Source of the DNA: Bugula neritina
Taxonomy: Eukaryota > Animalia > Bryozoa
Length of the DNA: 64,000 nucleotides
Assembly (NCBI GenBank): GCA_964035545.1
Contig: OZ037769.1
Span: forward strand, 11,562,633 to 11,626,632
Direction of reading: 5' to 3'
Part shown: piece after piece, positions 31,898 to 64,000 of the stretch
Layout of the letters: each line of letters begins with the position of its first letter
Numbering within the stretch: the stretch's first letter is position 1
The notes under the pieces: model-generated
The model's input: the letters and a program-made list of their open reading frames with translations, nothing else
The model's database searches: none
What the model was told of the DNA's origin: nothing
Position numbers and translations under genes: made by a program

Positions 31898-32584
31898 TTA
31901 AGGGTTGAGGGTTTGAGAAAATTTAACATCAGTTTGCCATTTTTACCTGCTTTCCATTGGTACCATTATTACTGTGCCGTTATTCCCTGTGCCACTTTTA
32001 CCTAGAATAATAAAATACACCCTAACTCACCGAAAGAGAAGACAATTTCTTGCAGATCTACTGGTCCTTGCTGATTACTCCCTGAATACGGTGATACCCT
32101 TTGGGACCCAACTGAGATAACACTTGTGATGCTATTGAGCATGTGCAATCTCAAACAGTTCGCCTTATCATAAAAATCAAGTTTAGGTGTGGAGTAATTG
32201 AAGGCCGAATGCAACCAGAGCTTAAACCACTAAAAGAAAGATGAAAGTCACACAGGTTGTCATTAATGATGAGAATACTCTTAGATGAAACCAGGCATCA
32301 AACCCTGTTATATCGGGAGATGGAGTTTATAGCTATTGCAACTCACCGAATAATATCATTGGGTTGTAGCCTTCAGGTGAGCTCGAGTTCAGCATACAGG
32401 CACGGATCGCTTGGCTTGGCTGCAAGGTGACTCCAGTTCCCGTCACTCTGTAGGGGTATTTGTTTGTAGGGGTATTGTCGAGTCTCTGGATTGGGGTATT
32501 TGTCTGTGTGCTCCGCCGTCGACTTCTTGGGCTAGCACTCACCCATATAGCTTAATGCATTCTGCACAATCTTCAATCTCTTCA

Positions 32585-32588
<4 letters not shown>

Positions 32589-32675
<87 letters not shown>

Positions 32676-32800
32676 CCTCTCTCTCTTCCCCTCTCTCTCT
32701 CTCTCTCCCCTCTTCCCCTCTCTTTTTCTCCCTCCCTCCCTCTCTCTCTCCCTCCCTTCCCCCCCCCTCTCTCTCTCTCTCCCTCTCTCCCTCTTTCTCT
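32589..32800. repeat. (CT)n microsatellite and pyrimidine tract
   Basis: About 40 perfect CT units followed by degenerate CT/CCCT. Confidence 0.97.
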
Positions 32801-33500
32801 CATACACAATCCCTTTTATACTTTTCATTTTCATTCAAGCCACACATACACCACACTCACCAATATTTTATAACTATATTGCTGCAGATCGTCAAACTCT
32901 GCTTTTTAGACAAGCAGAGATACGAATTGAAAGTAGTTATAATTTTAATCATTAATGATTATGTAATCCAAATTATAAAAAGTAAAGTCAAGCTGTTGCA
33001 ATACTAAATGTCTAATATATGTATCTATGTAATAATTCTTCCAATTATTATTATTGAGAGTGGATTCTGTATCTGCAATGGTGCCTTATTCGATTAACAG
33101 TTCAAAGCAATTACTCAGCTGCTAGCGTAATAAAAGAACTATATTTGTTATAAAATATCCATAAAATATAAGAGAGAGACACATCCAGTATCTAAGTTAC
33201 ATTTACCGTCTAGTTAGAACCTACTACATTCATCAACATACTACTCCTAACTAATTACTCAGTTCTCTGTAAGCATTCTGCTCCGCAGGGGGTAGTCACG
33301 TGCTTCAATGTCATTGGCTATTCTACACGTGAACGACGTGTACGCTTCGCTAACCACTACACCGCCCCCTCCAGCAGAGAGCCCACTTCCTGTCAAAAAA
33401 TCAAACTGGGGAAAGAAGCGTACCACACACACAAAAATCGATATATATATATATATAAAATATACAAAGCATTTCCGATTCTAAAAACTATACCAAAAAC

Positions 33501-33506
<6 letters not shown>

Positions 33507-33546
<40 letters not shown>
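33507..33546. repeat. (TA)n microsatellite
   Basis: About 20 TA units. Confidence 0.9.
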
Positions 33547-33553
<7 letters not shown>

Positions 33554-33661
33554 AACATGCAGGCGATTGTCCATATTTGCACCATATATACAACAGTTAT
33601 AAGCGTATACAGCTTAATGGTCATCAGGTTGTCTTTCCAGGACGAGATAGTTTGTAGAGGA

Positions 33662-34559: not shown

Positions 34560-35200
34560 AGAGACCGCAACTCGCTTGCTGCAGCCGAGATCCTTGGGGC
34601 GAGTCGATGTACTTTGCGCTCTAATTCACTAGCCCGGAGCTCCACTTCACGTAAGTTACCGGCCAAGGATGAAGGACGAGGAGAAGAGGAGTGCCACTGT
34701 CACTTACGGTCTGAGGAAGGAGGAGGGGAGGACGAGCGTTTGTGGGGTCTCGTCTCGATGCGTTGCAGTAAGACTCGGGGAAGAGACTTAATAGGAGGTA
34801 TAGGTTCATCTGGATAGCGTTTCACATTTGGCTTCCGGTATCCGGGGGGGGGGGGGAGGGGGGTTTAGTGGTAGGGCCAGGGGTGATGGGTCTGGGAACT
34901 AGAAATCCCTGTGAGAGACGCTCGAGTTGAGCTGGATTGGAGACGAAAGGCTGTATCAGGCTGAAGAACTTGGGATAAGATGCCTCATCCACATCATATA
35001 AGTTTTCCTTGAAACAATTCATCGTCCTCTGATGGCGAAGTATGTAGTCCCTGTGGTAGCTGAACTCTCCACAGGGACAAAAGGTGGTGACAAAGTGTTG
35101 CGGAATATGTACCCGCAGCCTGCGGTGGGTTGTAAAGTGCTGCTGACAGAGTCGACACGTGGTGCTGTCTTCATCACCCCGGTGTTGGAGGATTTCTTTC
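34560..35200 (-). pseudogene. Gypsy C extra double zinc-finger ORF remnant
   Basis: Minus-strand translation CRLCQQHFTTHRRLRVHIPQH...FCPCGEFSYHRDYILRHQRTMNCFKENLYDVDEASYPKFFSLIQPFV. Confidence 0.7.
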
Positions 35201-38200: not shown

Positions 38201-38696
38201 GAGACGACTGCCACGCTACCACCTCTGCGGTGAGCCGGTTAAACCGCTGCGCTATCCCCTCAAAGTCTGGTATGTATTGCCAGTAATACCCTGCCAGGCC
38301 CAGGAATGCCCGTAGTCCGGTCAAATCCTGGAGGGTAGCTCAGTCCTTCACTGCTTGCACCTTTTCAGGATCCGTAGCCACACTGTTTCGACGGCGACGT
38401 GCCCCAGGTACTTTACCTCCGGCTGCAACAGAGCGCACTTGGAGGGCTTTAGCTTTAGACCGGCACCCCCGAGTCTTTCGTAAACCTCCCTCTGACGACT
38501 GACGTGTGTCTTAAAGTCTGGAGAGATTACGATGACGTCATCGAGGTAGATCAACAGTGTCTTCCATTTAAGTCCGCTAAAGACCTGTTCCATCAACCTC
38601 TGGAAGGTGGCTGGGGCGGAGATCAACTTGACGGCGACACCTTCCACTTCCATAGCTCGTCCTGCGGTCCAGAAGATCCCGGACTTGTCGGCTGAC

Positions 38697-39451
38697 CACA
38701 GGATAGTTAAGGGCAACCTTTTAGCTGCAACTGCCTTGCTGAGGTTTGCATTGTAATCATATAAGAATTCAGTACCAGTAAAATAAAATCTCACCTAATT
38801 GTGCTAGAGTCAAAATTTAAAAACTATGTTGTAGATCTTCTTTCCCCCAGTGCAACCTTTTTGGAAAGTTCAATTTTCATTTTTGTTGCAAAGTTATAGA
38901 CAAAAAACTGCCCAATTTCGGCCTATTTTGCCAGAAAAGCTGACTTTTCAGTACCAGTAAAATATCTCAGCAGCAAAACATGATATCTGAATAAAAATTG
39001 CACTGCTGGAATCCTGAGATATTTCTCTAGTGCATCTTTTTTTCTTTTTCCAATAACTCTGCTAGATTGCTCATAAATTGGTGATTTATACACTGAAAAT
39101 GCCATTTTTGTTCATGAGAAACTAGCAGCGCGCAGCACTTCACGCTTCAATGAGCACGTAGGGATGAGAAGATATTGGCGCGTACATAATAATTACAGGC
39201 TTGCTAGCTGGCAGGCTATTTTGAATAACTCGCTTTGGACTTTGTTTATGTAGCACCCATAATGAAATGTTGATAGATAACGCAGCCCTAATGAAGGTTG
39301 CTGCTTATTGGTTGTAGTTTAATCTTAGGCTAAACAATTGCAAGTAGGCAACACGCATGCCACCCGCAGAGCAATATTATTCAAGAACCTGAACTACATT
39401 TTGAGAGAAATTTATGATATTCTTAGTGAGGATGCCCTTAACTATCCTGTT
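38697..39451. mobile_element. ~750-bp MITE, copy b, inserted in Gypsy C pol
   Basis: Same TIRs; interrupts the pol sequence GTCGGCT(G/A)ACCTCC. Confidence 0.8.
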
Positions 39452-42400
39452 GTAACCTCCTTTTCCTTTTCCGGCCCCAACCTACGCGTGGGTTGCCAAA
39501 TAGGAACTGTTCCCGCAGCCAGCGGTATCTCATGACAGACGACTCGTGTCAGGCCTACGTCATGAATTCCGCTGCTGAACACGCCGTTCTACTCGCGCAT
39601 CAACTTCGCCATAGCCTGGCGATCCTCGTTGTCATGCAGCCGTGACAGGTCGCCTCATACAACTCCTTGACGTGTGGCGGGATGATCCCCCGCTCTCTAG
39701 GCGGGCGCTGTCAGCGATCACCCGTCGTGTCTCCCAGCAACGGTCCCACGCTCTCTTTCTGGGCAGAGTGGAAACGGCCCAGCATGAACCAGGCCAGTAG
39801 CTTCACCGACTCCATGAAGGGGTTGACGCACTGCACTAAGATCTCTTCTCGCGCAGTCGGCTGATTGAGACTGCTAGCAAGCTGGATTCTATTGTGCGCA
39901 CCTTCCACCACCCCTAGTCCGGAGATCTGGCTATTATTCACTCTACAGTGAATGGTAGCCCGGGAGGGGCCCGGTATCGTACAGTTCCGTATTACCTGCA
40001 CGCCACTAGAGGACGGCTGAACTTGTCGACACAGGTGAGCTCTCGCTCGGCCATCAACATTGCAGACTTACTAAAGTCAATGTGACACCTGTGTTGTTTT
40101 AAGAATGGCATTCCGAGAATAGCATCCTCTTCAAGTTGACTGACGACGAACGTCTCATGTATGGCTTAGTCACGAACACGCCCAGTCAACTCTATAAGGC
40201 TGTAGAAAGGGATGCACGACCCGTCGGCAAGGTGCCATGCTCTCCTGTATATGGCTCTATCCCGGCTCTTTTTTTGGGAGGAAGGGTATCGAAGGCACGA
40301 CGGCTGAGGAGGTTTGTGGTATACCAGGAGTCTAGTAAGAAGGTGACAGCTCGGTCGGTACCTTGCCTGGTAGGAAATAATTATCTCCGTGTGGTTGTAC
40401 CCGTACTTCCCCTGCGTGCTCGGCTTCAGTGAGATAGAGCCCCCCTGGCCTGGCCCGCGATTGGCGGGGCTTCTGGCGGCAAGGGTTTTGTTTCCCGGGG
40501 ATGGAATGTTTCCCTTTTCTCTCCACAGGTGGCCCGCCCACCAGCTCTGGTTCTGGCAGCCGGTCGAAGCAATTGGTGAGTGGCAGTGTAAAGGTACTGG
40601 GTTGCCTTTCTGGTCGACTGGTCCTACGTGGTACCTGCCACTCTTGAGAAGTATACCGTCGCGTCGGTGCAGACGGTCGGCGGTTTTCCTTGCTGGAGTC
40701 CTCCATTCCTGGCTCGCGGGAGGCGGAGACATCCGCGGGCCGTGGAAGTTTAACTCCCATTTGTTTTGTGGACACTCCATACAAAGATGTCCTTGGTCAC
40801 CGCACTCTCAACACAGAGCCGGTGGCCGCGGTGTCTCGTCTGCTACTGCATGGGTCTTTAGACGAGTTGCAGAGTGTCGGAGCGAGTGACGATGGCCACC
40901 AGCTTCTCTATCATCCCAGTCTCTTCACCGTAGCTGCATGTTCCTGGAGGGGCGTGCGTAGCTCACGACGCAGCTCTTGTAGACCGGCCTTGGCATCTAC
41001 AGCGGAGATGCTGAAACGGGCCCGCAGTGCAGCGAAGATTTCATCAACGCTGGTTCCTAGTCCATACGGTTTGGCCTGTTCTGTTGGTGCCATCCTCAGT
41101 TGGATCAGGGCCACTCAGGGTGGCCACTGGGTGATGTCTACCACATCACTGAATTATTGAATAAACTGCTCTACATCTTTCAGGCCAGTAAAGGTGGGGC
41201 TTCCAGGCGATACCTGTAGGTCTCCTTCTCTTGTAACACGGGGCCCTCTGAGGCTACAGCAATATCAAGCTCACCTTCCATGTGTCAAGCTGGTTCTCTC
41301 GCCATCCTGGTTCTTATTAACGTCTGTCAGGTATTTGCATTGCACAGAATGGTCCTACCGCTGCCACCAATGTCATATTTTCCAATTACGTTATGATGGG
41401 GTTCTACTGTTTGCAATTACCATAGTGGTCAGTTACGTAATTAGATCAGAATAACTCCTGTTTCAGTATGGGAACGACAAATATATTTGAGGCATATAAG
41501 TAAAAGAAAAAAGTGCATTCAGTTGTCCTGAATGTACATAAGTCAAAACGTATCACAATTACTCCAACATCTATTTTCACACAAGTCTATTTTCTACTTC
41601 AGCAGTCTCGAAGCTCTCTGCTTCGCAGGGAGGCAATCACGTGACACAATGGGATTGGATATGTACAAGAGTATGCCATGCCCTTTTATATTCAATTACA
41701 GAGTGTAATCTGTGCTGCAACTACACTTCCACTACCCATTACAATATTATTCTGCATATTTTTTACACGTACTTACCATGGTAAATACCAGAGTTATCCC
41801 CCTTGACACATAACTTATGGCTATTTTTCTAAATACTGCATGGTTATAGCTAAGTTTGTGTTGCAATTTTCCAATATCTTAAATACTATATCTACTGTTA
41901 AGCTTTTAGAGCAGTAAACAGTTTATAAATCCTTTTCCCACATTTACAAATTGCAACGTTGTATGCAATCTAACATTCCAACAAAACAATTTGATAGTGC
42001 TCTGTCTAACACTTTTAACAAATCTCCAAAATGTTGATATATAGTACCATTGAATTTCCAACAATCTAACATTTCAATAAAATAATTAGCATATGCATCG
42101 TGCTATAATGCATAGAGAGAAATAATGAGGAGTTGTCCTTTCGATAATAATAATAATAATACAAGTCTCTACAACAGGGGGATACTAGCCCGAATGACTT
42201 GAACGTTGGCTGTTACGGGGAAGTAGTGTCGATGTCAATTTCTGCGGAACAAGCTGAACTATCGCGGCTATTTTTCGAAGGATAAGAATGCTGCAATAGG
42301 TCACGATGCAATAAACAAGGAACTGGCACCTGCTAGCGCTACCAATGGTAATATAATAATAAATGCTCGAGAGATTATGGTACACTAGAAGTGGAGGCGA

Positions 42401-47183: not shown

Positions 47184-50100
47184 ATGGCGGAAGGTAAGTC
47201 AGTTTTAGTGAACTAAGTAAATATAATGTAGTAGTTTAACCATTATCCAAGTAACTTATATGAAATTATACAAACTCAACTCATAATGCATTCTTCTGAA
47301 AAATTGTGACTCATTGATGACTATTTTCTTTCATTTCTTAAGTTTATGCATCTTGAGTTCATTTTTTAGAACCAACAACTCAAATATGTTAAAATTGTAA
47401 TCAAGAATTATATGACCACAAACTTGTACTAGCTAAATATTTATTTCTAGTCTATCAGATGATTGCTATGGGTATGACAAATCTAACTTCCTGCTATAAC
47501 ATATGAACTATTGTTACATATGCAACGGATGCTGCTACAGCCCTGACAATGACAATTATATCATACCATAAATAACAGCCATATAGCCATGAAGCATCTA
47601 TTATAATTTTGAATTTTCTCTGAACTAATTGTATTTTTCTGGAATTTAAATATCTTACATATCTTAAATATCTAAACAAATTATCCTGGCTACTCAAGAA
47701 TACAACAGGATAAATTACAAATCTTCAACGTTTCAAAGACACTAACTGGAACTCAGAAGAAATACGGACAAATACAGAAAGAGGCTCTAGCTATAGTGTT
47801 CGCACTAAAGAAGTTTCATCAATACCTCTACGGCCGGCGGTTTATCTTGGTTACCGATCACCGACCATTATTGGCACTATTTGGACCTACAAAGGAGACG
47901 CCAGCTTTAGCAGCCAACAGACTAGCAAGATGGGCACTGCAACTCAGTCAATACGATTATAGTATTGAGTATCGCACGACCAGCAAACATGGCAATGCAG
48001 ATGCACTTAGTCGTCTGCCAGTTGGCCCAGACTTCAAGTTTGATGAGGAGGAAGATGGCAATGATATGGACACGATATGCACGATACGACTGATTTCTCA
48101 ACAATTGAAGCCAACAGATCCAGGAGTACTTCTAAAAGAAACCTTGAAAGATCCCGTTCTGTCTACAGTAATTCGCTACACAAGAGAAGGATGGCCTAAA
48201 ACACTAGAAGAGACAAACACAGAAGATGAGGACCAAACTCATAGTGCAGCTTACAACATACAGTGTTTCAAGAAGGTGTCTGGCTCACTCTCTATCTCAG
48301 ATGGATGCTTGCTGTACGGTTCAAGAGTTGTAATACCGCTTACCCTTCAGCCACAAGTTCTGCAGATTCTTCATCTAGGACACTTTGGCATGCAGCGGAT
48401 GAAACAACTCGCACGTTCTGCTGTTTATTGGCCAAGAATAGACGCAGACATCATGGATGCTTGTAAACAGTGCAGCTCTTGCGCTGAGCACCAAAATCAA
48501 CCAGCCAAAGCTCCTCTCCATCCTTGGATGATTCCAGAAAAGCCATGGAGTCGTATTCACATCGACCATGCAATCAACTTTCTGGGAAGCAACTGGCTAG
48601 TAATTGTGGATGCATACTCAAAGTATCCCTGCATACATCCAACTACATCAACATCTTCCAAGAGAACTACAGAGCTTCTAGAACAAGACTTTGCACACTT
48701 TGGATATCCCCACACTATTGTATCCGACAATGCAAGCACATTCAAGTCTGACGAGTTTCAAAGCTGGTGCCGGGATCGTGGAATAGTTCATCTATCTGGA
48801 GCCCCTTATCACCCTGCCACAAATGGAGCAGCTGAAAGACTAGTGCAATCATTTAAACAGGCTCTAAGAAAATCTAATTTACCACCAAATCTAGCTTTGA
48901 CTGAATTCCTGATGCACTATCGACGCACACCCTTGATAGGAGGATACTCGCCCAGTGAACTGCTGAATGGGAGACAGATTCGTTGCAAAATTGATGTTCT
49001 GCTACCATCACCAGCACACCAAGCCCAAGGACGACAATCAAAGGAAGTGGAAAAGTCTACAGACCAGAAATCCACTGTATCCAAAGTTCACACCTATACA
49101 GTTGGAAGTCCTTGCTACGCACTCTATTGTGGGCCCCGAAGAGACAGAGAACCACGATGGGTCCCTGCCATTGTCACAAAAGTATTGGGACCAAGAAGTA
49201 TAAATGTCAAAGTCACACCAAGAGGACCAATATGGAGACGTCATATTGAACAACTATTACCACGCTACGGGGTTGAGGAAGATTCTGAACCAGCAGACGA
49301 TGTGAAATTTGAAGTTCAAATGGCTGATGTTTCAAATGACGATAGTACTGCTAACCAAATACCTCAACCATGGAGAAATCCCGACTACCCATAGGAGGAG
49401 AGTATGGACCTGAAAATCTTAGAAGATCAAAGAGATTGGCAGCTCGCCAAAATACATAGATGCATCAAAGGCTAGTGGGGAGATGTTACATATGCAACGG
49501 ATGCTGCTACAGCCCTGACAATGACAATTATATCATACCATAAATAACAGCCATATAGCCATGAAGCATCTATTATAATTTTGAATTTTCTCTGAACTAA
49601 TTGTATTTTTCTGGAATTTAAATATCTTACATATCTTAAATATCTAAACAAATTATCCTGGCTACTCAAGAATACAACAACTATATTACAAGGTTTAGTA
49701 GATGTACATTGCATGGTATTTCAATCTGTAGAGGAAAGATATAGAATATGGTTTAACTCTGTCAGTATAGAAGAATCTGATAGAGAATGGGTGAAGAATA
49801 TTCCAGATAAAAGCTACACAATAAATGGGTTGAGACTTGAAAGTAGACGGCATACCATCACTCATGTTATACTGTGGTTTAGCACTCCTCCAGATATTCA
49901 CAATCTCTTCCCTCATCTCACACACCTCGTGTTGAAGGGTATAGAGTCATCTGCCAGGCGTAGCGGGTAATGAAACTCCTCATGATATATTGTATTATTT
50001 AATATGATGTTTATAGAACTTCTTTACTGAAATGTGCAGGTGTAGCATGAAATTATGTCCCTCTTCACCTCTCAGTTTCTTAATATTTATATTCTGGTAG

Positions 50101-53100
50101 TAGAAAGTATTATATATCTGCCTGCTATTTTACAGCTTATCTAAGTTGAAAACTATTGAGAAACAGAATGTGTCAAGGAACTTTCTGTCTGATTATCTAC
50201 CAGATGACATGTTCAATTCTTTACAGTTACTGAAAGAGTTGCATGTCATTGGCTGTAGTCTCAGAACTCTACCAACGAGGTATGTACTGTATATATAATA
50301 AATTATAGTAGAATGATACTGTATGCTGTCCTAAGTGACTCATTATGTAAATTGCTTGCATGTTATAATATAAGACTGCATTAATAGCAGATTATACAGT
50401 GTAATGAATGTATTGTAACACTAAAATGAATTATATACATGTCTGTTATATTACAGCATATCTCAACTGAGAAATCTTGAGATACTGAATGTGTCAGGGA
50501 ATAGCTTGTCTGGTAATCTACCAGATGATATGTTCGAGTCTTTACAATCACTGAAGGAGTTGAATATCAGCGGCTGCACACTCACCACTCTACCAAAAAG
50601 GTGTGTGCTGTATATATAATTATTCTATGTTGACAGAGTAACAACTCTCAACAGAGTCCTACATTGGCTGAATTTCTCTCCATCTAAAACCAGAATTATA
50701 TTATGTTTTGCATTTAATGATTTGCTCTGTCTAACATGATAAGAACCAACTCTCATTGTATGCTATTCTCAGCTTCTGCAACACTGAGCTGCCATGAAAG
50801 TTTAAACTTTGAACTTTCATATTACTAGTTTTTACATAACTGAACAGTTATTAGAATTTCTGCTCTATGGAACTCTGTGGTGGCTCGTGGAGCTACCAGC
50901 AGCGTAATACGGGGAAATATGATTTCCCCTACTATACAGCACGGGGTCACGTAATTGACCCGGAACAATGGACAGCCAATTAGCGACACTGATAGCTAGT
51001 AGCAGTAGTTAGTTTTCCTGCGTTAGTTAGTCGAAGATAGAGTATTGAATTGTGTAGACGTATAGATTAATTGAATGTATTTGTATAGTTTTTGTGATGT
51101 ATTCTTGTGTGTAAAATATACTCGTATTAACTCGACTTATCCTGGTGAAGTTCTCTAGCACATAAATAGACTTTCTTGATTGCACATCAACCCAAAACTG
51201 AAAAACATAACAACTCTTCAGCTATGATGAACCAGTAGACTAGAGGAATATGTTTTTTTAATTTGAATGTATAACAGTGCTGAGTTTGCATATGCCTTGT
51301 TTTAAATATTTCATAAATTATTTTAGCTTTGCATATACAATGTTTTATCCCAGGATATAATGTATATTGTTAATTATCATTGTTATTATTAATGTTTTTT
51401 TCCAAGTAACTTGTTTTGTTTGCAGTATAAAGTATAATGTAACAAATTTTATCGTGCAATCTCATTATATTTAATATGTACAGCATAATCATCTTACAAC
51501 AATAGAAATATTATATACAAGTCCATTATATTACAGCGTATTGGAGCTAACAAATCTTCAGATACGGAATGTGTCAGGGAATTTTCTGTCTGATAATCTA
51601 CCAGATGATATGTTCGAATCTTTACAATCCTTGAAGGAGTTGAATATCAGTATCTCAACTGAGAAATCTTGAGATGCTGAATGTGTCAAGGAATCGGTTG
51701 TCTAATAATCTACCAGATGACATATTCACATCTTTACAATCACTGAAGAAGTTGGATATCAGTGATTGCTGTCTCAGAACTCTACCAAAAAGGTGTGTAC
51801 TGTATATATAATTATTCTATGTTGACAGAGTAACAACTCTCAACAGAGTCCTACCTTGGCTGAATTTCTCTCCATCTAAAACCAGAATTATACTATGTTT
51901 TGCATTTAATGCTTTGCTCTGTGTAACATGATAAGAACCAACTCTCACTGTATGCTATTCTCAGCTTCTGCAACACTGAGCTGCCTTGAGGGTTTAAACT
52001 TTGAACTTTCATATTACTAGTTTCTAGATAACTGAACAGTTATTAGAATATCTGCTCTATGGAACTCTTCAGCTATGATGAACCAGTAGACTAGAGGGAT
52101 ATGTTTTTTAATTTGAATGTATAACAGTGCTGAGTTTGCATATGCCTTGTTTTAAATATTTCATAAATTATTTTAGCTTTGCATATACAATGTTTTATCC
52201 CAGGATATAATGTATATAGTTAATTATCATTGTTATTATTAATGTTTTTTTCCAAGTAACTTGTTTTGTTTGCAGTATATAGTACTGTATAATGTAACAA
52301 ATTTTATCTTGCAATCTAATTATATTTAATATGCACAGAATAATCATCTTACAACAATAGAAAGAATTATATACAAGTCCATTATATTACAGCATATTGG
52401 AGTTAACAAATCTTCAGATACGGAATGTGTCAGGGAATTTTCTGTCTGATAATCTACCAGATGATATATTCGCACCTTTACAATCACTGAAGGAGTTGAA
52501 TATCAGTGACTGCCGACTCAGAACTCTACCAACGAGGTATGTACTGTATTTCTAATAATTATAGTAGAATGAGACTGTCCTAAGTATTCAAAGGAAAATC
52601 TATTTCATTATGTAAATTTTCTGCATGTTCTAATCTAAAACTGCATTAATAACATATTTTACAGTGTAATGAATGTATTGTAACATTAAAAAGAATTATA
52701 TACATGTCTGTTATATTACAGCATATCTCAACTGAGAAATCTTGAGATACTGAATATGCCAGAGAATTATCTGTCTGGTAATCTACCTGATGATATGTTC
52801 ACATCTTTACAATTACTGAAGGAGTTGAATATCAGTGACTGTAGTCTCGGAACTCTACCAAGGAGGTGTGTACTGTATATATTCAAAACATAAATTTGTA
52901 GTAGAATGAGGCTGCATAATGTCATAGAAATTCACTTTTCTGCCTCTTAATTTATAGCTATAAATTTTCATCACCTCTACTTATGCATATTAATTGCATT
53001 TAAAAAAGAGATAAGAAATATTTGTAAATGTAACGCATCCAGAGAGTACTAGACTGGTTTTCGTATCTGTAAATGTTTTCTAAAGGATTTTCATACCTAT

Positions 53101-56100
53101 TCAAAGTAAAGCGTAGTGTCTGCATATATAACTGCCCTACACTAGTAGTACATATATGAATAGCAGTAAAAGGTTTAATGTACAGGCAGCAGTGGGTATT
53201 TTCATGCTTAGAACTTTTTTTTTAAAACAATGAAACTGTAGTCAAACTACTTTATTCTGGCAACTTTTTACAATGAATCATATTCTATTGAAATTTAATC
53301 AGGATGACTTTAAATAGAAAAAGCATTTTGAGTTGAATTTTGATTATTCCAGACCTATATTAATCTTAAAGTAGTTGCAAGAATACTGTACTAGCTGATG
53401 ATAGAATTAGTGGTCTAATAGACGGTTTTCGCATACCTCTCTAGGGGCTTTTATAGTTTGAAGTTGTCTCCTCCCACCCGGTACATGGGGGAGTCTCCAT
53501 GATATATAGAGAGTCATAAAATCAGGAGAAATTTAAGGTTTGTGTGAAGACTATTGCTAGCATAAGTTTCTTTTCTGAGATAAATATTTTGGTCTAAGCA
53601 TACGTAGCAGTTCCAAAAAAGTTTAAATTTTTTTTCTTGACAAATCTTAGAAAAATGAACTTCAAAGCATGTTTGTAGTTTTGGTTACTGAGCTAGCTAA
53701 ATCTGTAACTATGATATAAGTTCCATTAATCATTTGTTATGCTGGCTGTCATGTTCAATTTATAGCTGTTGACCTTTCAACTCTTCGGTTAGGTTCTGCT
53801 GTTAACAAAATTTTAGAGCACTGCTAGTGACTGAGACAGCAGATTAGCTGTGTTAGCATTTTCAATTGGTGACTAGTCAATATTCCGAAGGCCCATTAGT
53901 CCGAAGGCCCATTAGTCCGAAGGCCCATTAGTCCGAAGGCCCATTAGTCCGAAGGTCCATTAGTCCGAAGGTCCATTAGTCCGAAGGTCCATTAGTCTGA
54001 AAATTAGTAGACACATGATAGTAAAGAGCATCCTCACTGAGAATATCATTGATTTCACTCACAATCTAGTTTAAGTTCTTGCTCTGTTAATGCTGTATGT
54101 GGGTGGCATGCGTGTTGCCTGCTTGCGATTGTTTAGCCTGAGATTACACTATGACTAGAAAACAGCTGCCACAATTAGGGCTGCATCGTTTATCAACATT
54201 CCATTATGGCTGCTTTATAAACAAAGTACACAGCAAGCTATTCACTAGCCTGTCAGCTAGCAAGCCTGTAATTAGTATGTACACATCAGTATCTTCTCAT
54301 CTCTAAGTGTTCACTGAAGCATGAAGTGCTGCGAAATGATGATAACTTAGGAAAAAAATTTACTGGCATTTAATTAGTATTACTTATTTTACAGCTAGTG
54401 TAAAAATGACAGGGGACTGCAATTCTATTCTAGCTACAGTCAGTCAGCTACACACCATAATATACCAAACCAAACAAATCCGCAAGATATGTAGATAAGG
54501 GCAACCTTCTAGCTGTAACTGCCTGGCTGGGGCCACACTATTGGTATATAAGAATTCAGTCCAGCCAAATAAAACCTCCCCTAATTGTGCTATAGAATCG
54601 AAATTTAAAAACCATGTTGTAGATCTTTCTGTTCCTCAAAGCAACTTTTTTGAAATTTCCAATAGCTTTTATAGATTTTCTATAAAATATAAAAATATAA
54701 ATATAAAAAATAAAATTTTCGGACTAATGGACCTTCGGACTAATGGACCTTCGGACTAATGGGCCTTCGGACTAATGGGCCTTCGGACTAATGGGCCTTC
54801 GGACTAATGGGGCTTCGGAATATTGCTCCATCCCCTTTTCAATTGAGTATATACTTACGCCTTTATGCTATAAGAATAGCTAAACTACCGAAAAATGAAA
54901 TGTGGATTGATACATGCTATCAAATTTTATAGCAGGCTAAATGCATCTATTGCAATTGTGACAATTATGCTCAAATAAATATATCTATAGATAAACCCAA
55001 ATAGTCTTTTACCTGTTGGCATTCAGGCTTTTGTGTTACAGTTTTGTTATTTCTTAATATTATGCCTGTGGCTTGTAGCATTTAGGAGCAGTAGTGGAGA
55101 AGTTGAAGTAGCCCAAGTTCTTTGAATTACTTTAAAAATGTTGGTGTTGCGAATAACATAACTTCTTTTACTGCATTTCTAATCTAGAACACAGGCTATT
55201 CTCAATTTCTCCATTACTGCACCTATTGCCCATAACACACTACAGTCGAAACGCGACTGTGGCGGCCATTTTGGAGCTGCTTGCGCATGCCTTCAACGTC
55301 ACGTCCTACTTTTTACTGATCACACTACAGTTCACTACGAACGATGAAAGCTAACTGTCTCTAGTCTCGCAGTAAACTTTTAAACCAATAGGAATGCCAT
55401 AAACCAGTTTCTGCAGTATCCACAGTAACCAACAATTAATCTTGGCGCAATTTTTTGAGATTTACTAGCATAATTTAATAAGATTTTCTAGTTATTTTTA
55501 TTCTAATTTACTAGCTTCAATTATTCAAAATTACTAGCTTTATTTAATGATATTACTTAGCTTTATTCAAGCTCATTCACTAGCCTAAAGAACTAAATAA
55601 TTATAGTACGCTAATAAAATTCAACCAAATTAGAAAAACTAAATATGCAGATAAAATTTAGCAAAATTTATCTAATGAATACTTATTTTCATGATTTATT
55701 GAAACTTTCATACATAACTTCATCATAATTATTTTAAAAGTAAATTAATATAATTTTCGAAGAACCAAATCAAATAATAATGCTCGCTAGTAGCACGTGG
55801 AAAAAGTAAAAGCACTTAACCAATCAGGGTTTACCTGGCCAGTCAGTGATTGGCTGATCGCTCAACTTCAGCGATGACAGTTGAACATGTTGAACTTTCA
55901 TCGCATCGCGAAAAACTGACAGTTGCGTTCAGTTGTGACGTCACAGAGGTCAACGCTTAGCCTCGAAAACGCGTTCAAGATGGCCGTTTTGACTGTAGTG
56001 TGGCAGCCCCATTAATCTTGTGTGTAGTAGTCATATCCGCTGGCTGCAGTAGACTCAAGGTCCTAGTTAATGTAGATGGTAGGTTAGTTATATAATTAAA

Positions 56101-59100
56101 TAAAAAAAAGGCTAAGCTAAGCCAACTACTACCGGACCTGAAAACCCAAGTTTTCCAACCCATCGAATTGCAGTATAAACTGAATTATCTGAAAACCGCT
56201 TCAGAAAGAAATTCTGGTTTAAAGTATTAGGCAGATTCTGATAAGTGAAGCAGTGAAATAATGCTGATAAAATTGAGTTATTAACTTTTTGCTTGGGTTT
56301 ACAGTGAAACTATTTATTGTTATAGCTTCTCAACTTCTCATACTCTAAATATCTACATCAGCTAATCTTATTGAAACTTAGCTGTAGTTTTACAGCTGGC
56401 TTGGCTGATTCTGGGTCACAAAATCTTATTGTAAACTTTATATTACACAAGAACTTTGTCTAGTAGTTCAGGCTACTTTATTATAACTGTAAACTATCTA
56501 ATGATATTATAGCTTGTCCAGGAGAGTACTGCCATATAAAACTATGACAGTGGTATATGTATGTTGATAAATTATGGAACTATTATAAATAAGCATAAAC
56601 ATAACAAGTGATTCACTAGCATAAGGAAAGGCAGCATAAAATTGTAATTAATTATGAATCAACAGCTGACATCACAAGAGTAAATATGAACATGTTTAAT
56701 TATTAGCAAATGCACAGTTATAATGCTTTTCTTTAATTTGAGCCTCACATTCGGATGACATAAAATTTTAGAGCTTGGCTATAAGTCAAGACAGCACCAA
56801 TTAGAATATTACAGCTCTTATCTTGAAATAGGCATAAGCGAGGATAAGTTAGCATCAAGTATAACATTTCAATTAAAACTTTCAAATAAAACTATTAGAC
56901 CTGTTGTAAAATATGTAATAAAGATATAGGGCAGACAAAATATTTCAAGATGACGTTGAATGAAAAGATGTCTGCCTAAATATAAAATATTTTAACTAAA
57001 TTTTTGCATAAACTGATCTCTGCTTCTCTTAGTAATATTTTTCTTTTAAAGAAGTTTTAGCCATAACATGAAACTATCTAAAACATTCACAGTTCCTTGA
57101 ACATAATGTAGCACAAGCTCTTAAAAGTATAATCAAGTGTACATGCTATAGCCTATAACACAGCTAGGCTGCTGCACAGGCATGTGAGTAATTACAATAT
57201 GTAACTAGGAGTGAAACAGGACCACTGCAGAATTGAAAGGTCAATTCAGTTATAAATTGCATGGTAATAACAGATAAGACAACAAATGATTATTGGGGCT
57301 TAATCATAGTTGCCATTTCAGCGTTGCCTAGCAACGAAAACCACAAAATCCGTGGAGGACACAACTCTTAATTGTAGGGGAGATCTCGATGACATTGGAA
57401 AAGGGTCTTATTATTCGATATTTGTATATCAATTCAAAGTTTTAACATAAATTTGATGTTTTACATGGTCTGTGACTTGCTGCAATCTGCTTTCTAAACT
57501 TTAGCTTACAGTCATTTTATTTTAGTATACAGAACCTCCAGGCTTTACAAAAACTAGACATATCAAGCAATATATTCAGCAACATTCCACCTTTTGTGTA
57601 CACATTGAGTAGTCTGCAAGAGCTGAATATATCCTACAATGAGCTTCTGAAGTCTCTACACCCTGAGATACTACAGCTGACTCACCTTCATGCACTGAAG
57701 ACAGATGGTTGTGATGCTCTCGCAACTCCTCCACTAGAAGTGTGCAGAGGAGGATTAGATGCTGTGAGGCAATATTACAAGGATTTAGCTCAAGGCTCCG
57801 GAAAGAATATCCCATTCGCTACAGTTGCTATGCTTGGTAATACAATGGCAGGAAAGACAAGTTTAGTTAGAACATTGCAAAGCCGTGAGAGAAGAAGAAT
57901 TTTGACTTACAGAAGCCCGGAAGCTGCCGTAGATGAGACGACAAAAGTCTTCAATGTTCAAGAAGTTGAAGTAGATGGCACAGTGCTGCGTGTCCTTGAC
58001 ATGGGGGGACAGGAAGTGTATCACGCAACATATCAACTCACTTTGAGACAAAACTGTATACCAGTTGTTGTAGTCAATATGGAAGAATATGAAAGCCTTT
58101 CTACAAAGTTTTCCAGTAGAGAAGCTGTGAGAAGATTAGCCTTTGACTACATGTCTCACCTCTATCTGGCCAATCCAGCTCTTGGTGCACCTAAGCTCGT
58201 CTTGACTCATAGAGACAAATTTCCGGGCACCAAATTTCTAGAGCTAAAATCGTCGTTTCTCAACTTGGTGAATCAAATAAGTGCTGAGATTGTTAAAGAA
58301 GAGAAAGAGGTTGGTGGTGCGTTTTGTCGAATTGAACATTTCAAGAAATCAGCAGGTGGAATCTTCATTGATGATGACATTTATGAAGTCGGAATTGATG
58401 ATGAATATGAAGTGTTCGACCAGATCAAGAAATCTCTTTTTCAAAGCAGTCAAACTTTTGTCAAGCCTCTGCCTTTGGTTTGGGAAGAAGTGAATGAGAA
58501 GGTTCTGCTTTTAGAATCTGGCTACAACTCATTCTGGTTTGTTCTGGCTATGCTAAGACAGCAAAACCTTCAACTTGAATCTGGTCAGCTGGGCATCATT
58601 CTTACTTACATGCACGATTGTGGTAAGATTCTGTGGTACAAAAATCTGGATACCCTGAAGCCTTACATCTTCCACAAGATATCAGAAGTTACCAAACTTT
58701 TAACAGTTCTGTATCATCATGATCCCAGTGTGTGGAACAGCCGACATGATCAGTTCCTGCCATTTCTTTCTGGTCATAAAACCTTTGAGATACAAGATTT
58801 TGAAGCAGCCGTAAGTCAATTCACTGAAACCAGTATTTTAACACAGAATATCTTAAGCTATTTAATAAAAACTCAGACCGAATTTAGGAACCACAATGAT
58901 GTAGAAGTTGCTATTTGCCTTCTCAAGACTTTCCGCCTGCTACACGGTCCGTTGCATCATCAATCTGGTGATGATTCCACCGAATTGTGTTTCATTGCAC
59001 CGCAATTTGCTAGAGAATACTTGAATATTGAGTACCAGTCACCAAAACGCATGCGCCTCCATGTTGGCATACTGTTCAATGGCCTAGCGTTACCACACTA

Positions 59101-62100
59101 TGTTTACCATCAGATGACGGTTGGTTTACTAGAGCGGTTTCCTGATGAACTTGCTGATGTCAAAGTCAAGAGAAACGGGGTTGATGTGTATCAAGATGAA
59201 ATATACACGAGGCTGATACACGACTACAAGTCAAGAAAAGTGCTTTTATTTGTCTCATCAGACGCAGAAAACATCATCAGAATGTGGCAGATATTGATTA
59301 CGTCTACTAACAGCATCCTCAGGCATGTTTTAGAAACATGGCCCGCATGCAGACCAGTCCCAACAGTTCACTGTGGTCACTGCTTGTTGCTAGGCAACCC
59401 TCATCCTATAAAGAAAACATCACCTCAGTGGTGTCTTCGCTCTGTAAACTCGGCTGTTCCTCATGTCAAATCATATAAAGGATCCTCAACAATCAAGTGT
59501 CAAGGAGAAGTAATCCCTGCTGCTTTACTCTATCCATGTATGTTGATTTCAGTTAATTAATTAACTTGTTTATTTATTATGAATACATAAATAAGTTCTG
59601 GGCTATGATGCTGATTTACTAACATTTAGACATCGTGGTTGTATATGATATATATTTTGCACTCTGAGATATACTTTATATAATATAAATGTGTAAAGGA
59701 TCTCATTGAATCCTATATAATGCAGCTCATAAAGCTCTTTCTCTTTCCTCTATTGATAAGTCTTGTATGCACATGAATATTTTCATGCAAAATATATTCA
59801 CTCAAACAGTAATTGCTGCCTAAAAATCTGTAAGTTATTGAATATTGCATAAACAAGTTTTCAAATAGTTTGCCTTATTGCATAGCAAAGCCTTATTCCA
59901 TGTTATCCAATGAATATTCCTCTTTACCACCTCTCTTTAATCACAATCTGAAGAATATTTGCTATATTTTGTTGTTAAACCATCTTATCAAATTACAGGT
60001 GAGACTCTGTCAGAAGCAGATTCTGAGAAGTTTAAAAGTGCTGTCAGTGAATTGATTGCCAGAGAAGAGAGAAATCAACCAGATACTTCAGGTAGAGAAA
60101 TGCATATTATTATATATGTGGCTGAGCCACTAAATCTAACTCTTGGTAAAAATGAAGATGTGTGATTTCTAGATGTTACAGTGCCTTTAGTTTGGTTACC
60201 TTTGCAGTTCCATTGTATGCTAGACTACAACTTTATAGAGTAACACTTTTCAAAGTAATCTTTTGAATCTAGAATCCATAGCAGTACCTTTGTAGGCTGT
60301 TCAGTTTTGCTTTCTTGTTTGAATCAATCATACTTTGTATAGAATCTAAATTTCAAGACATTAACTCTGTTGCACTAAAAACTGGTACATGGTTTTGTGT
60401 TTTCCAGTTGAAGATAACGACCTATCAGATCTGAGAACTGAGGAGGTTACAGCCAATGATGATCTGAGTGATCTCTCCGATGAAGACGAGTATTTGTACC
60501 CTGATAAAGAGAAAGGTGTGCAAATGAGGTTGATAAGACCCAAGCTGGAAACGACTACAAACTTGAAAATCAAGCAACTTTTTTCTAACACTGATAAGGT
60601 AATATTTCGTATAATCTAATATAGTATTTAAAGGCACACAGGTGAAGCACATATGTAAAATCTTTCTATGCAAACAAGCCATTATTTCCAATTTATAACT
60701 GCAGGTATACAGTATGACACGCAAAAGAGGAAGAGCTCTGATAATAAACAACAAGAACTTTGATAAGAGACCAGATCTGTGTAGGGCAGGTTCAGATGTT
60801 GATGTTGAGAATATGTCTGTAACGTTGAAGGACTTCAAATTTGAAGTTGTGACTCACACAGATCTGAAAACAGAGGTAGGTATGGTGTGACAAGACAGTT
60901 TCTACTGAATATAAGCTTATGGTTTGTGTATTGTCATATCGTAAAGCTTGCTGACTCAGCATTTACCAACACATATGCAACGGCAGTTTCTGTAGGAAGT
61001 GCGTTTCTACTAAACTAAGTCGAGGCATCTATTAGAATAAAAACATTATTCAGCTAATTCATAACACAAATTTTCCAGGCTATTCTGTCTACCATTAAAC
61101 ATGAAGTACAACGTAAGGAACATGAAGATTTGGGATGTCATGTGTTGGTTATCATGACTCATGGGGGTGTGGGTGGTTTCATTTATGGAGTAGATATGAA
61201 GAAAGTGAGCCTCACTCATGTGTATGACCTGTTGACCCCACTGAACTTTCCTGGAATGTCTGGGAAACCAAAGATTATCATTCTGGAAACTTGCAGTGGA
61301 AGTGTTTCTACAGTTAGTAGAAAGTGCTTTGGGAAGGATTGAAAGTAATTTTCAGATTACTCAAAGCTTAATCTGCTATCAATTTAGTTTATTGTATAAT
61401 TGTCATTTGGTAATGGATGAGCAATTTCTTGTTTTATTAAAATTGAGACTGACAGCTTGGTTGGATTTTCTTGTTTAAACAATTATTAGTTCGGCCATAA
61501 CGAATATATAGATTCTAAACTTGTATAAAATGATATCACAGCTAGGATAGATGTTGGGAACAGAGGCATAGACTCAGCACCCAATGTTGGACAAGCTCAG
61601 ATAGAGCATGCTGAAATCGTCTCACCCTCCCCTACCAGAACCCAAACCGTTGAGAATACCGAGTGTAAGAATAAGAAGAGCTCTGGTGATTTGTTAGTAG
61701 CTGAATCTTCCATTGAGTGTGAGTAGCACAGCTATGCTTTCTTGATAAACCCTCATAATTAATAATAGTCCTACATTTCTCATGCATTAGGAGTGTTCAC
61801 TATCTTATTATGTTACTTTGTTTACCATTAAGACAATTTTGGCTTGATCATTTCACAATAAAGTAAATAGTTTGCATTCAGTGGTGGCCTACACTCACAT
61901 GGCAGTATCTATAAACATAACCAGTTTATTTCACAGCTGGGATAGATGCTGGTGATAAAGACATAGGCCAAGAACCTGGTGCTGGACCAGCTCCGAGAAA
62001 GGATGCTGGAATAGTGTCACCTTCTCTTGCGGAAAAACAAGAGAACGGGAATTTTGAGTCTAAGATTAAGAAAAGCTCTGATGATTTGCTAATAGCTGAA

Positions 62101-64000
62101 TCTATCGCAGAGTGTGAGTAGAGTAGCGATTGATAATTTTAAACAAATTCTTATAGTTGATATTACTATATTGTATTAGTATTAGAAACACAGATAGTTT
62201 TTTGCATATCACTTCTTCTGTACATCTTTGAATGTGCATTTCACAATATAATGAATATTATGCATTCCATAATGGATGAAAAAAAAAATATCTACTAAAA
62301 ATGAGCATTTGTTTCACAGCTGGAAAAGATATTGATGACAAAAGCATAGGCCCAGTACCTGATGCTCTACTAGCTCAAAAAGAGGATGGGAAAACAGGGT
62401 CACCCCTTCCTGTTAGAATTCCAGGAGATAAAGATGCTGAGGCTATGACCAGACTGAACTATGATGATCTGCTAGTAGTGAAAGCTAGCATGGAGTGTGA
62501 GTCTACTCAGTTGTGTTGTATTTCTGTATGCATCTTCACTGAACTATATTTACTTACTGAACAATAGACCTCATGGAGGGTAAAGAGGTGTACTGGGGAA
62601 TGCTACAGATTTTTAGCAGGGGTGCTGTGCTGTGCTGTGCTGTGCTAATCAGAATAAAAATGACAGTTTTTACTTATCTTAAGCATTAAAAGGGTCCTTG
62701 AAAAATGGGCAAAGGGCCACAAGTAGTGAATAGTAGACCACATGGAGGGTCAATAAGTGTACTGGGAATGTTATAGCTCTGTAGTATGTATCCACTGCTT
62801 TCAACACTATACTGATTGTTAATATAATAACCTGGCCAGGTTCCATATTCTCATCACAATGTGTCCCAATTTAATCTCTGTTTCAGTATTTCTATATAAA
62901 TATTAACTATTGTAGCATTTACATCAAAGATACATCCTGTGTATGGGTCGCTAATGGTTAGAGCTCTTGTTTCTTCAATGTATAGACATGCCGGTCACCA
63001 TGATCTCTTCACCATATTCAAACAAGTAAGTTTACCAGTTTAGTTTCTGTAATACAGACTCAATTACCCTAGAAACAACAGTTGCAAAGTAACATTGTGA
63101 AACCACATTGCATCTCTAGCAATGCTGAAAGACATTCACTGGTTCCAAGCTTCGAATAAATGATTTTTCATTCGATGTTTAGAAACAGTTGCATTCAATG
63201 AAACCACATAACTACAATCATAGGTTCATGCTAACCGCAACCACAAACTCAGCCTTATGAACCTCCATTCCCATCGTCCAAAGTCATGGTAACTCGGCAA
63301 ACCCAATGTTTTTAATGGCTAACTAAATTTCTCCCAGTATAGTTACAGCAGCCATCACAATGCAACAAGCAAATACTTGTAAGCAAAGATTAACATGTCA
63401 ATAGGTGGGCTGGTCTCATAATGTGTTGGAAAAGAATTATTCCAGATCACTTAAAGAAGAAATGCTTAAAAGTTTAGTCCTTACTATCAGCATGTTGTTT
63501 TTATCATGTAGCTGAGAATAGGATTCTTTTTCACTCTCAATTTTGTCAAATTAAGCGGAATTATTTATTTTCTGTTCTCAAAAGACTATAAACCTTCAAA
63601 ACTATGCAACAGTTTGCTGCCCAGTTGATGTGAATTGACTCAAATCATTTTCTGTTGCAATATTTTGCTCGATTACTTTATGATTTTTACCCAACTTTGA
63701 TGTACTTTTAGTATGAATAGTTAACTCTGCTTGCTCCATTCTACTGCTAGATAGCTTTTATTTTAATAGAGAGGTAGTTCTCCCCTGAAAGCTATAATCT
63801 GCAACAGCAACAAGGCTTATAGTAGCACTCATATATTCCACTATGACATCATCCTTCTGTCTGAGTCTCAGAAGTTAGAATTCTGGGATATCTGACTCAT
63901 GTCACATGACTCGTAGTCACATGAGTTCAAGTCATAAACCTTTTTCTTAGAAATGTAAATTGTTGAAACTTACAGTTAATTATGATTATGTTTAGGTACA
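47184..64000 (+). CDS. LRR-ROC-COR-caspase fusion gene, copy 2 (last exon starts at 63996 and runs off the window)
   Basis: Exons 47184-47193, 49732-49966, 50136-50279, 50457-50600, [51537-51792 fused, out of frame], 52393-52536, 52722-52865, 57526-59537, 59999-60091, 60408-60598, 60705-60875, 61079-61301, 61542-61718, 61937-62113, 62320-62496, 62916-63025, 63996-. Open throughout if the fused exon is skipped. Confidence 0.87.
47512..49679 (+). mobile_element. Internally deleted Gypsy LTR retrotransposon D (different clade) in the first coding intron of copy 2
   Basis: Apparently identical 196-bp LTRs at 47512-47707 and 49484-49679, 5-bp TSD ACTAT, PPT AGTGGGGAGA. Absent from copy 1. Confidence 0.92.
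47796..49394 (+). CDS. pol: Gypsy D truncated pol: RNase H C-terminus + integrase
   Basis: TDHRPL, NADALSRLP, HLGHFG...CSSC zinc finger, DDE core (IHIDHA, SDNA, AERLV). Confidence 0.9.
   Translation: MFALKKFHQYLYGRRFILVTDHRPLLALFGPTKETPALAANRLARWALQLSQYDYSIEYRTTSKHGNADALSRLPVGPDFKFDEEEDGNDMDTICTIRLISQQLKPTDPGVLLKETLKDPVLSTVIRYTREGWPKTLEETNTEDEDQTHSAAYNIQCFKKVSGSLSISDGCLLYGSRVVIPLTLQPQVLQILHLGHFGMQRMKQLARSAVYWPRIDADIMDACKQCSSCAEHQNQPAKAPLHPWMIPEKPWSRIHIDHAINFLGSNWLVIVDAYSKYPCIHPTTSTSSKRTTELLEQDFAHFGYPHTIVSDNASTFKSDEFQSWCRDRGIVHLSGAPYHPATNGAAERLVQSFKQALRKSNLPPNLALTEFLMHYRRTPLIGGYSPSELLNGRQIRCKIDVLLPSPAHQAQGRQSKEVEKSTDQKSTVSKVHTYTVGSPCYALYCGPRRDREPRWVPAIVTKVLGPRSINVKVTPRGPIWRRHIEQLLPRYGVEEDSEPADDVKFEVQMADVSNDDSTANQIPQPWRNPDYP
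50136..52865 (+). CDS. Copy 2 LRR exon array: four intact 144-nt exons plus one 256-nt fusion of two exons
   Basis: 50136-50279, 50457-50600, 52393-52536 and 52722-52865 are intact. 51537-51792 is chimeric, with TGA at 51670-51672. Confidence 0.88.
50876..51212 (+). mobile_element. Solo LTR related to the Gypsy B LTR
   Basis: TG...CA termini and TSD ACTC. Shares GTAATTGACCCGGAACAATGG and CTCGACTTATCCTGGTG with the reverse complement of 23407-23711. The empty site is visible at ~52042. Confidence 0.85.
53419..57410. mobile_element. ~4-kb composite insertion in the intron before the ROC exon of copy 2
   Basis: Absent from copy 1 (homologous site about 7255-7270). Ends TAGACGGTTTTC ... GAAAAGGGTCT; the right end resembles the 2213-2640 MITE TIR. 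Contains nested elements. Confidence 0.55.
53868..54835. mobile_element. MULE/Rehavkus-like non-autonomous element with subterminal 16-bp tandem arrays
   Basis: 9-bp TSD TTTTCAATT (53859-53867, 54836-54844) and GG...CC ends. About 7 x CCGAAGGCCCATTAGT at the left, with the inverted array at 54719-54824. Confidence 0.75.
57526..59537 (+). CDS. Copy 2 large exon: last LRRs + ROC GTPase + COR
   Basis: ORF 57596..59560, collinear with and highly similar to 8513..10474. GNTMAGKTS, DMGGQ, THRD and YMHDCGKILWY are intact. Confidence 0.92.
60705..63025 (+). CDS. Copy 2 caspase domain exons (p20: 60705-60875, 61079-61301; linker triplet: 61542-61718, 61937-62113, 62320-62496; p10: 62916-63025)
   Basis: Same motifs as copy 1: RGRALIINN, THG, ETCSG, DLLV, YGSLMVRAL. 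Confidence 0.9.

Follow-up and report, generated by a model that had tools for sequence, protein, structure and literature searches.

A candidate single-chain LRR-Roc-COR-caspase gene family in the bryozoan Bugula neritina

In the Roco proteins of animals, i.e., MFHAS1/MASL1, LRRK1, LRRK2 and DAPK1, leucine-rich repeats (LRRs) are followed by a Roc GTPase domain and by COR-A and COR-B. The LRR folds back on Roc-COR, and COR mediates a nucleotide-dependent self-association. The output is a kinase in the LRRK proteins and DAPK1, and MFHAS1 has none. The usual view of animal caspases is that they become active via death-fold adaptors, which sit on platforms of STAND ATPases or receptors, and initiator caspases are activated by induced proximity. 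Here we describe a gene of the bryozoan Bugula neritina in which a Roco module and a caspase are joined. The gene lies in a stretch of 64,000 nucleotides (nt), here called the window (C5:11562633-11626632; contig OZ037769.1 of assembly GCA_964035545.1), which holds two tandem copies of one gene type with retroelements in between. Copy 2, which starts at window position 47184, encodes a chain of about 1,440 residues, consisting of a short N-terminal region, the LRR, Roc-COR-A/COR-B, an acidic/basic linker of about 95 residues, and an animal-type caspase. We are highly confident that LRR, Roc-COR and caspase are fused in one gene. The best explanation overall is a spliced, single-chain LRR-Roc-COR-caspase gene of a large family, together with the receptor mechanism proposed below; we give it a probability of roughly 0.6.

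Relative to the other animal Roco proteins, the bryozoan chain has the same order of LRR, Roc and COR-A/COR-B, and its predicted fold matches those of LRRK1, LRRK2 and the C. tepidum protein CtRoco. It differs in having a caspase as its output, in an extra Cys/His tail after COR-B, and in copy number, at least 60 as against one to four genes per genome. A Roco protein of amphioxus (P0155) is similar in tying an animal LRR-Roc-COR chain to the death machinery, and such proteins are the nearest non-bryozoan matches. P0155, however, carries the Death adaptor domain PF00531 instead of a protease, and the identity is only 22-23%. The NLR inflammasomes and the apoptosome (NLRP/NLRC4 with ASC and caspase-1; APAF1 with caspase-9) likewise combine a repeat sensor, an NTPase switch and a proximity-activated caspase. 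In contrast, the bryozoan switch is a Ras-like GTPase rather than a STAND ATPase, and the caspase is covalently attached rather than recruited; no CARD, PYD or DED was found by Pfam in the bryozoan linker.

In bacteria, conflict systems have been computationally predicted in which LRR-AP-GTPase(Roc)-COR is followed by a C-terminal effector, namely a caspase, trypsin or TIR domain, and they show the same order of variable LRRs, a Roc-type GTPase, COR and a death or protease effector, including a caspase-like one (PMC8195603). These systems are known from sequence analysis only, whereas the bryozoan caspase is of animal type and its gene is intron-rich, which points to independent assembly in animals and not to transfer. 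A horizontal origin from a bacterial Roco-caspase was considered and rejected: it is animal caspases that the caspase resembles most, and outside the bryozoans the Roco part has its nearest matches in amphioxus. Brown algae have large families of LRR-ROCO candidate immune receptors, the LRRs of which come from shuffled cassette exons, and one group has a C-terminal peptidase domain, IPR009003 (PMC3341825, PMC11378527). That peptidase is not a caspase, and the lineages are unrelated. We take IPR009003 to be a trypsin-like peptidase. The initial annotation of the window, made from the letters alone, knew of no characterized animal Roco protein with a caspase effector. No paper on an animal Roco-caspase was found in the literature searched, although the predicted bacterial systems are a precedent for the architecture. 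The logic by which a repeat sensor and an NTPase switch share one chain with a death effector is a known one; the animal Roco-caspase combination would be the new element.

The window is eukaryotic DNA with 41% G+C, from a genome of 216 Mb. The exon chain of copy 2 was walked exon by exon, and domain, homology and fold searches were made with single exons; full-length comparisons are with database proteins of the bryozoan Watersipora. All exons lie on the + strand. With the fused LRR exon at 51537-51792 skipped, the walk gives an open frame of 1,442 codons, which starts at a predicted ATG (47184) and reaches its stop 139 bases after the last base of the window. The AG/GT signals are canonical at all sites, each exon is free of stops in its own frame, and the junction codons are sensible.

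The core of the sensor and switch is encoded by a large exon at 57526-59537, which carries the last LRRs, Roc, COR-A, COR-B and a CxHC...C...C tail. In addition to LRR, Pfam finds Roc (PF08477) in this exon, with an E value of 1.8e-8 and 35.1 bits against a cut-off of 27. The GTPase motifs are the P-loop GNTMAGKTS, DMGGQ and THRD; in an alignment of 44 homologues, G1, the Thr of switch I, DxxG and THxD show little or no variation. As to the switch, Pfam matched Ras-like GTPase families only (Roc, Arf, Ras and MMR_HSR1), and not the NACHT or NB-ARC ATPases of NLR/STAND receptors, and the fold matches are to Roco proteins. An AlphaFold2 model of the large exon, built with the 44 homologues as input, has a pLDDT of 86.9 and a pTM of 0.85. 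The best Foldseek matches of the model are LRRK1 (8e05, E 1.5e-23) and the crystal structure of C. tepidum LRR-Roc-COR (6hlu, 1.9e-21), followed by many LRRK2 structures and the RocCOR tandem 3dpu. The model aligns over its whole length to LRRK1, LRRK2 and the LRR-Roc-COR of CtRoco, with a sequence identity to solved Roco proteins of only 13-15%. By domain order and modelled fold, the large exon is a Roco protein, with the predicted COR directly after Roc.

After COR-B comes a conserved C-x-H-C ... C ... P-C tail, encoded by 59370-59537 plus 59999-60000, in which the last Cys codon is split by an intron (T|GT). The tail is a possible small zinc-binding module, and it is not visibly shared by LRRK1, LRRK2 and CtRoco.

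The connection between Roco module and caspase is made by two short exons. The large exon ends in phase 1 as ...CCA T|gtatgt at 59537, as the initial annotation had read it, and the acceptor at 59999 (...acag|GT) supplies the two bases that finish the conserved Cys codon. Similarity to spliced Watersipora proteins continues over the 59537/59999 junction, as in PC-ETLSEAD, PC-DTLSRRE and PC-YNLTDAE. Linker exon 1 (59999-60091) runs from phase 1 to phase 1. Linker exon 2 (60408-60598) encodes the acidic segment SDLSDEDEY and then a basic-hydrophobic stretch, and ends in phase 0 as ...GAT AAG|gtaata. Linker exon 2 resembles the Watersipora linker. The chain then enters the first caspase exon (60705-60875), which begins GTA TAC AGT ATG ACA (VYSMTRKRGRALIINN) and includes the start of p20. 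The catalytic motifs are in the second caspase exon (61079-61301), so that the in-frame path through two short exons to THG and ETCSG, also part of the initial annotation, holds when the phases are read.

Splicing along this path was examined with assembled contigs from four public runs, from four studies, aligned to 58050-64000; the runs were guessed to be RNA, and one is labelled RNA-Seq. The joints were all of the GT..AG type: 59537>59999 in runs X1, X4 and X10; 60091>60408 directly in X10, and in X1 and X4 via a divergent exon end; 60598>60705 in X1 and X10; 60875>61079 in X1 and X4; 61301>61542 in X4 and X10; 62113>62320 in X1 and X10, with a shorter side of 21 letters; and 62496>62916 in all four runs. 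A single contig of 256 nt (record 9) spans COR, linker 1 and linker 2. It overlaps a second contig (record 10), in which linker 2 is followed by 60 letters of caspase exon 1. Because these overlapping contigs carry COR-linker 1-linker 2 and linker 2-caspase exon 1, the chain from COR to caspase is present in spliced RNA. The RNA path that the initial annotation had asked to see, 59537>59999>60408>60705, is therefore found joint by joint in public contigs. Most contigs are 95-99% identical to the window, and 27 of the 106 from X1, with similar shares in the other runs, reach at least 99%. The contigs probably derive from other individuals or strains; what they demonstrate is the gene type, and not expression of the allele in the window.

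The caspase is recognized by Pfam as Peptidase_C14 (PF00656) at 60705-60866 and 61079-61306, with 38 bits each (38.1 bits on the 60705 exon; cut-off 21.4). When searched singly, the caspase exons match, in the PDB, sequences of animal caspase-8, caspase-2, caspase-9, caspase-3 and CED-3. MTHGG and ETCSG align to SHG and QACQG of caspase-8, placing the catalytic His/Cys dyad. The dyad is kept in 19 of 21 paralogues (three local copies and 16 of 18 others) and in six Watersipora proteins. The two others, L004 (C8:8282477-8282701, IIEAASGS) and L012 (C6:6130986-6131204, LEASSG), have lost the Cys and kept the His, and are possible decoy or regulatory paralogues. In p10, exon D (62916-63025; FTSKIHPVYGSLMVRAL...) and the last exon are similar to Watersipora p10. 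The initial annotation had counted p10 as full, but within the window it is incomplete: the last exon (VQTKVRKLCL...LYLFPGF...) begins at 63996, leaving five bases, 63996-64000, before the window ends. Neither linker exon nor the N-terminal exon has a Pfam family at E < 0.01, so that no CARD or DED prodomain is found there; the LRR-Roc-COR module stands in the prodomain position.

Between the active-site exon and p10 are three exons of 177 nt each: A (61542-61718), B (61937-62113) and C (62320-62496). A and B run from phase 1 to phase 1, and C ends with DDLLVVKASME, the p10 start; no Pfam family was found for C. The three exons (61542-62496; 19642-20613 in copy 1) are paralogous to each other, each starting with G[IK]D... 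and ending with the start of a strand, DDLL[VI], and they make up the intersubunit region. They are phase-symmetric, and in all three local copies they are free of stops and flanked by intact splice sites. In Watersipora and in more distant paralogues there is space for one intersubunit exon only. Strict mutual exclusivity of the three exons was considered and rejected, since the B>C joint was found. The joints from caspase exon 2 to A, from B to C and from C to D are observed; A>B is not covered, and the 5′ half of exon B has no contig coverage.

The same layout recurs elsewhere in the genome. The large Roco exon has 289 candidate matches, and the 65 that were scored are 57-92% identical and nearly all open. 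For the active-site caspase exon there are 141 candidates, all scored, of which 139 match at E ≤ 0.01. When the two lists were matched up by eye, 60 of the 65 scored Roco exons proved to be followed, on the same strand, by a caspase exon at a distance of 1-5 kb; for the remaining five, the distance is 6-15 kb. C1 (32.5-35.1 Mb) and C6 (2.5-6.3 Mb) carry large clusters. The family has expanded in tandem and has at least 60 members, probably well over 100.

Outside Bugula, a full HMMER scan of the Roco exon against 1.8 billion representatives returned mostly single-exon open reading frame (ORF) calls. The long matches are RefSeq models of Watersipora subatra, among them P0025 (XP_067947674, 1,419 residues) and P0044 (XP_067948342, 1,413 residues). 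Pfam finds LRR and Peptidase_C14 in both of these, as well as a weak COR-A match in P0044, and their Roc-COR stretch is assigned by homology to the large exon of the window. The gene for P0025 spans 57 kb and has a 2-kb Roco exon, two small linker exons, caspase exons and a single intersubunit exon. Architecture searches, made with the Roc-to-caspase part and, for long candidates, with the caspase part alone, found the combination in Watersipora proteins only; the next Roco matches are from amphioxus, without a caspase. The same layout in Watersipora indicates that the fusion predates the split of the two bryozoan lineages. The Watersipora models are named 'MFHAS1 homolog' or 'uncharacterized'.

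The remaining exons of copy 2 are as follows. A mini first exon is predicted at 47184-47193, where ATGGCGGAAG|gtaagt would encode Met-Ala-Glu, ending in phase 1 and in frame with exon 2. It is proposed from the sequence and is conserved in copy 1 at 2954. Exon 2 (49699-49966), the N-terminal region of 89 codons, ends in phase 2 and is weakly similar to the N-terminus of the Watersipora protein P0151. Next are four LRR cassette exons of 144 nt: a (50136-50279), which runs from phase 2 to phase 2 and encodes two LRR units, b (50457-50600), c (52393-52536) and d (52722-52865). Between b and c lies a fused cassette pair (51537-51792) of 256 nt, that is, 2 x 144 minus 32. The 32-base loss joins two cassettes and looks like unequal recombination between them.

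Retroelements have entered both genes. Intron 1 of copy 2 contains a retroelement fragment (47442-49698, + strand) with an RNase H and integrase ORF at 47676-49391, matched by Pfam RT_RNaseH, rve and Integrase_H2C2. Copy 1 is without it, and the collinearity of the copies breaks at 47442 and 49699. In copy 1, a 7.3-kb retroelement (12359-19616) occupies the intron after caspase exon 2, the active-site exon. Several long retroelement copies with large pol-like ORFs are seen within and between the gene copies, at 12359-19616, 24000-30700 and 34800-41200; retroelement ORFs on the minus strand extend over 15534-19442 and 26255-29791. The intergenic stretch also has long CT/AG and TA dinucleotide microsatellites at 32550-32700 and 33480-33560.

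Copy 1 (2954-22225, + strand) has the same exon chain and order, with three LRR cassettes. A third tandem copy, which also has exons A, B and C, lies 37 kb past the window end, at C5:11663672-11673800 (L041, L042, L021); at the protein level, its Roco exon shares 92% identity with that of copy 2. Between copies 1 and 2, the Roco exon has a dS of 0.14 and a dN of 0.05, for a dN/dS of 0.36. The segment 59300-61301 begins 238 bases before the end of the Roco exon and extends through the two linker exons and caspase exons 1 and 2, introns included; here the copies diverge at 2.5% of exon bases and at 4.3% of intron bases. Because dN/dS is 0.36 and the exons are less divergent than the introns, both copies have been constrained for most of their history. 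When 57442-61425 is compared with 8360-12359, synonymous divergence is 0.14 in the Roco exon, while the introns downstream differ by only 0.043. This drop in divergence beyond the Roco exon hints that the tandem copies have undergone gene conversion in their 3′ half.

How might such a protein work? In the proposed mechanism, the LRR arm would bind a ligand, microbial or non-self. Binding would free the LRR from Roc-COR and alter the nucleotide-dependent self-association of COR. The attached C-terminal caspase domains would then be brought together and activated by proximity, the Roco module replacing the CARD/DED adaptor route of initiator caspases. As a result, the cell would die or proteolytic signalling would set in, as part of immunity or of colony allorecognition. 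The Roco protein of C. tepidum counts against a simple version of this scheme: there, GTP binding favours the monomer, so that a dimerisation switch may run in either direction. A homodimer prediction for COR-B (large-exon residues 486-687, two copies, run without controls) gave a score of 0.00 with an uncertain fold, and counts neither for nor against binding. The whole mechanistic reading, from LRR sensing through the COR switch to caspase activation, we would place near even odds, if slightly under.

Several observations weigh against the fused receptor, and they need to be set beside the rival explanations. The contigs are short and assembled; strand, depth, full-length molecules and transcript starts and ends are not readable from them. 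This leaves some room for separate, neighbouring Roco and caspase genes joined only by occasional read-through, in which case the fused frame would be biologically meaningless. In-frame Met codons in linker exon 2 (VQMRL) and caspase exon 1 (VYSMT) could be taken in the same sense. The initial annotation had stated that copy 2 has neither a stop nor a separate start between COR and caspase; the first part stands, the second is qualified by these codons, yet the RNA joints show continuity. Moreover, the joints are in frame and canonical, Watersipora homology crosses the intron-split Cys codon of the COR tail, the linker is conserved between genera, order and strand are the same in 60 of 65 paralogues, and the RefSeq models and gene structure of Watersipora agree. 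We thus consider read-through of separate genes very improbable. The COR assignment has its own difficulty. The domain set predicted by the initial annotation was borne out by Pfam for LRR, Roc and Peptidase_C14, but no Pfam COR was found in the large exon of the window at E < 0.01. Homologues have weak COR-A and COR-B matches, and COR is judged to be present despite the Pfam miss because of the fold matches, including one to an isolated COR domain (3dpt; E 7.8e-10, TM 0.59-0.64 by target). Another possibility is that the family is real while the window copies are decaying; copy 1 would then be a pseudogene or a truncated gene that lacks the caspase, and copy 2 would be a pseudogene. In copy 1, linker exon 2 has one extra base in a T run, so that translation reaches ...QLFFKH and then TGA at 11521-11523, five bases before the donor. 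The initial annotation's statement that the same chain exists in copy 1 therefore holds for exon order, and not for an open path to the caspase. As assembled, copy 1 would encode a Roco protein without caspase, but a frameshift in a T run could be an assembly error. In copy 2, the stretch from 47184 to 64000 includes not only the intron-1 retroelement but also the fused cassette exon (51537-51792), the frame of which is broken and which yields stops if included; the 1,442-codon frame is conditional on skipping it. Skipping, however, leaves the frame unchanged, since every flanking exon runs from phase 2 to phase 2. Caspase exon 2 ends in phase 1 at a weakened donor, gtgttt, where copy 2 has a 4-base loss or difference relative to copy 1. 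Retroelements sit within both genes, and at the listed variant sites the contigs match none of copies 1, 2 and 3 exactly. Against decay are the Roco-exon dN/dS and the lower conservation of introns, the fact that exons A, B and C are open and keep their splice sites in each of the three copies, and the contigs at least 99% identical to the window. Decay of the window copies is, on balance, a doubtful account, though one with real weight.

The fused receptor may also be right in structure and wrong in activity or role. We take Arg179, Gln283 and Arg341 (caspase-1 numbering) to be the S1-pocket residues that hold a P1 Asp. In the window caspase, the Arg179 equivalent is kept (CRAGSD, within CRAGSDVD of caspase exon 1), but Gln283 is Glu (ETCSG), and the Arg341 equivalent, read as the residue five before the Gly of GSW, is Ile in exon D (SKIHPVYGS as compared with ATRSTSHGS in Watersipora). 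Among the 21 paralogues (three local and 18 others) and three further copies without a paired p10 exon, the Gln of QACxG is replaced by Glu in 18 (LE[TVA]CSG and variants), His in two and Leu in one, and retained in three; all six Watersipora proteins have Gln (QAC[SG]G). The Arg341 equivalent is Arg in Watersipora and in 12 of the 21 paralogues, and Ile, Val or Ser in the other nine, including all three local copies. The S1 pocket has thus been remodelled within the family, and the cleavage preference may differ from the usual P1 Asp. Because the pocket is non-canonical and the catalytic Cys is gone from the two paralogues described above, the protease may be altered or, in some copies, dead. 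It could then be that the caspase of this subclade has given up cleavage after Asp, or cleavage altogether, and acts as a protease of other specificity or as a scaffold. The window copies nevertheless keep His, Cys and the Arg179 equivalent, and specificity is not readable from sequence alone; we regard such a loss as unlikely for this subclade, yet deserving of attention. As to role, the genes might regulate developmental cell death, e.g., the cyclic polypide degeneration of bryozoan zooids, rather than serve as non-self receptors. A caspase effector under a GTPase switch would fit a regulated death programme, and these data contain no link to infection. A family of at least 60 tandem paralogues with a variable number of LRR cassettes, however, has the pattern of a recognition repertoire. 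Because of this copy number and the variable cassettes, recognition of non-self, i.e., microbes or other colonies, is favoured over housekeeping death, and a purely developmental role seems quite unlikely.

The family looks like undescribed single-chain cell-death or immune receptors. If this is correct, a Roc-COR GTPase wired straight to a caspase would solve the problem of caspase activation in a new way, and would be an animal counterpart of the bacterial GTPase-caspase defence systems. It would also offer a natural system for the biology of Roco proteins and LRRK2, with a readily assayed protease as the output of the GTPase switch. Public annotation hides such genes under 'MFHAS1 homolog'. 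For a phylum of colonial animals with hardly any known genes of immunity and allorecognition, a family of this size suggests a recognition repertoire. Tentatively, and at odds somewhat against, we propose that bryozoans may have a large, fast-diversifying repertoire of single-chain Roco-caspase receptors, with a Ras-like GTPase as the switch where inflammasomes and the apoptosome use a STAND ATPase, a built-in caspase that requires no recruitment, and a diversified substrate pocket. Animals would then have, in addition to the NLRs and RLRs, a third and independent type of cytosolic receptor for immunity or allorecognition, convergent with the predicted bacterial AP-GTPase-caspase systems.

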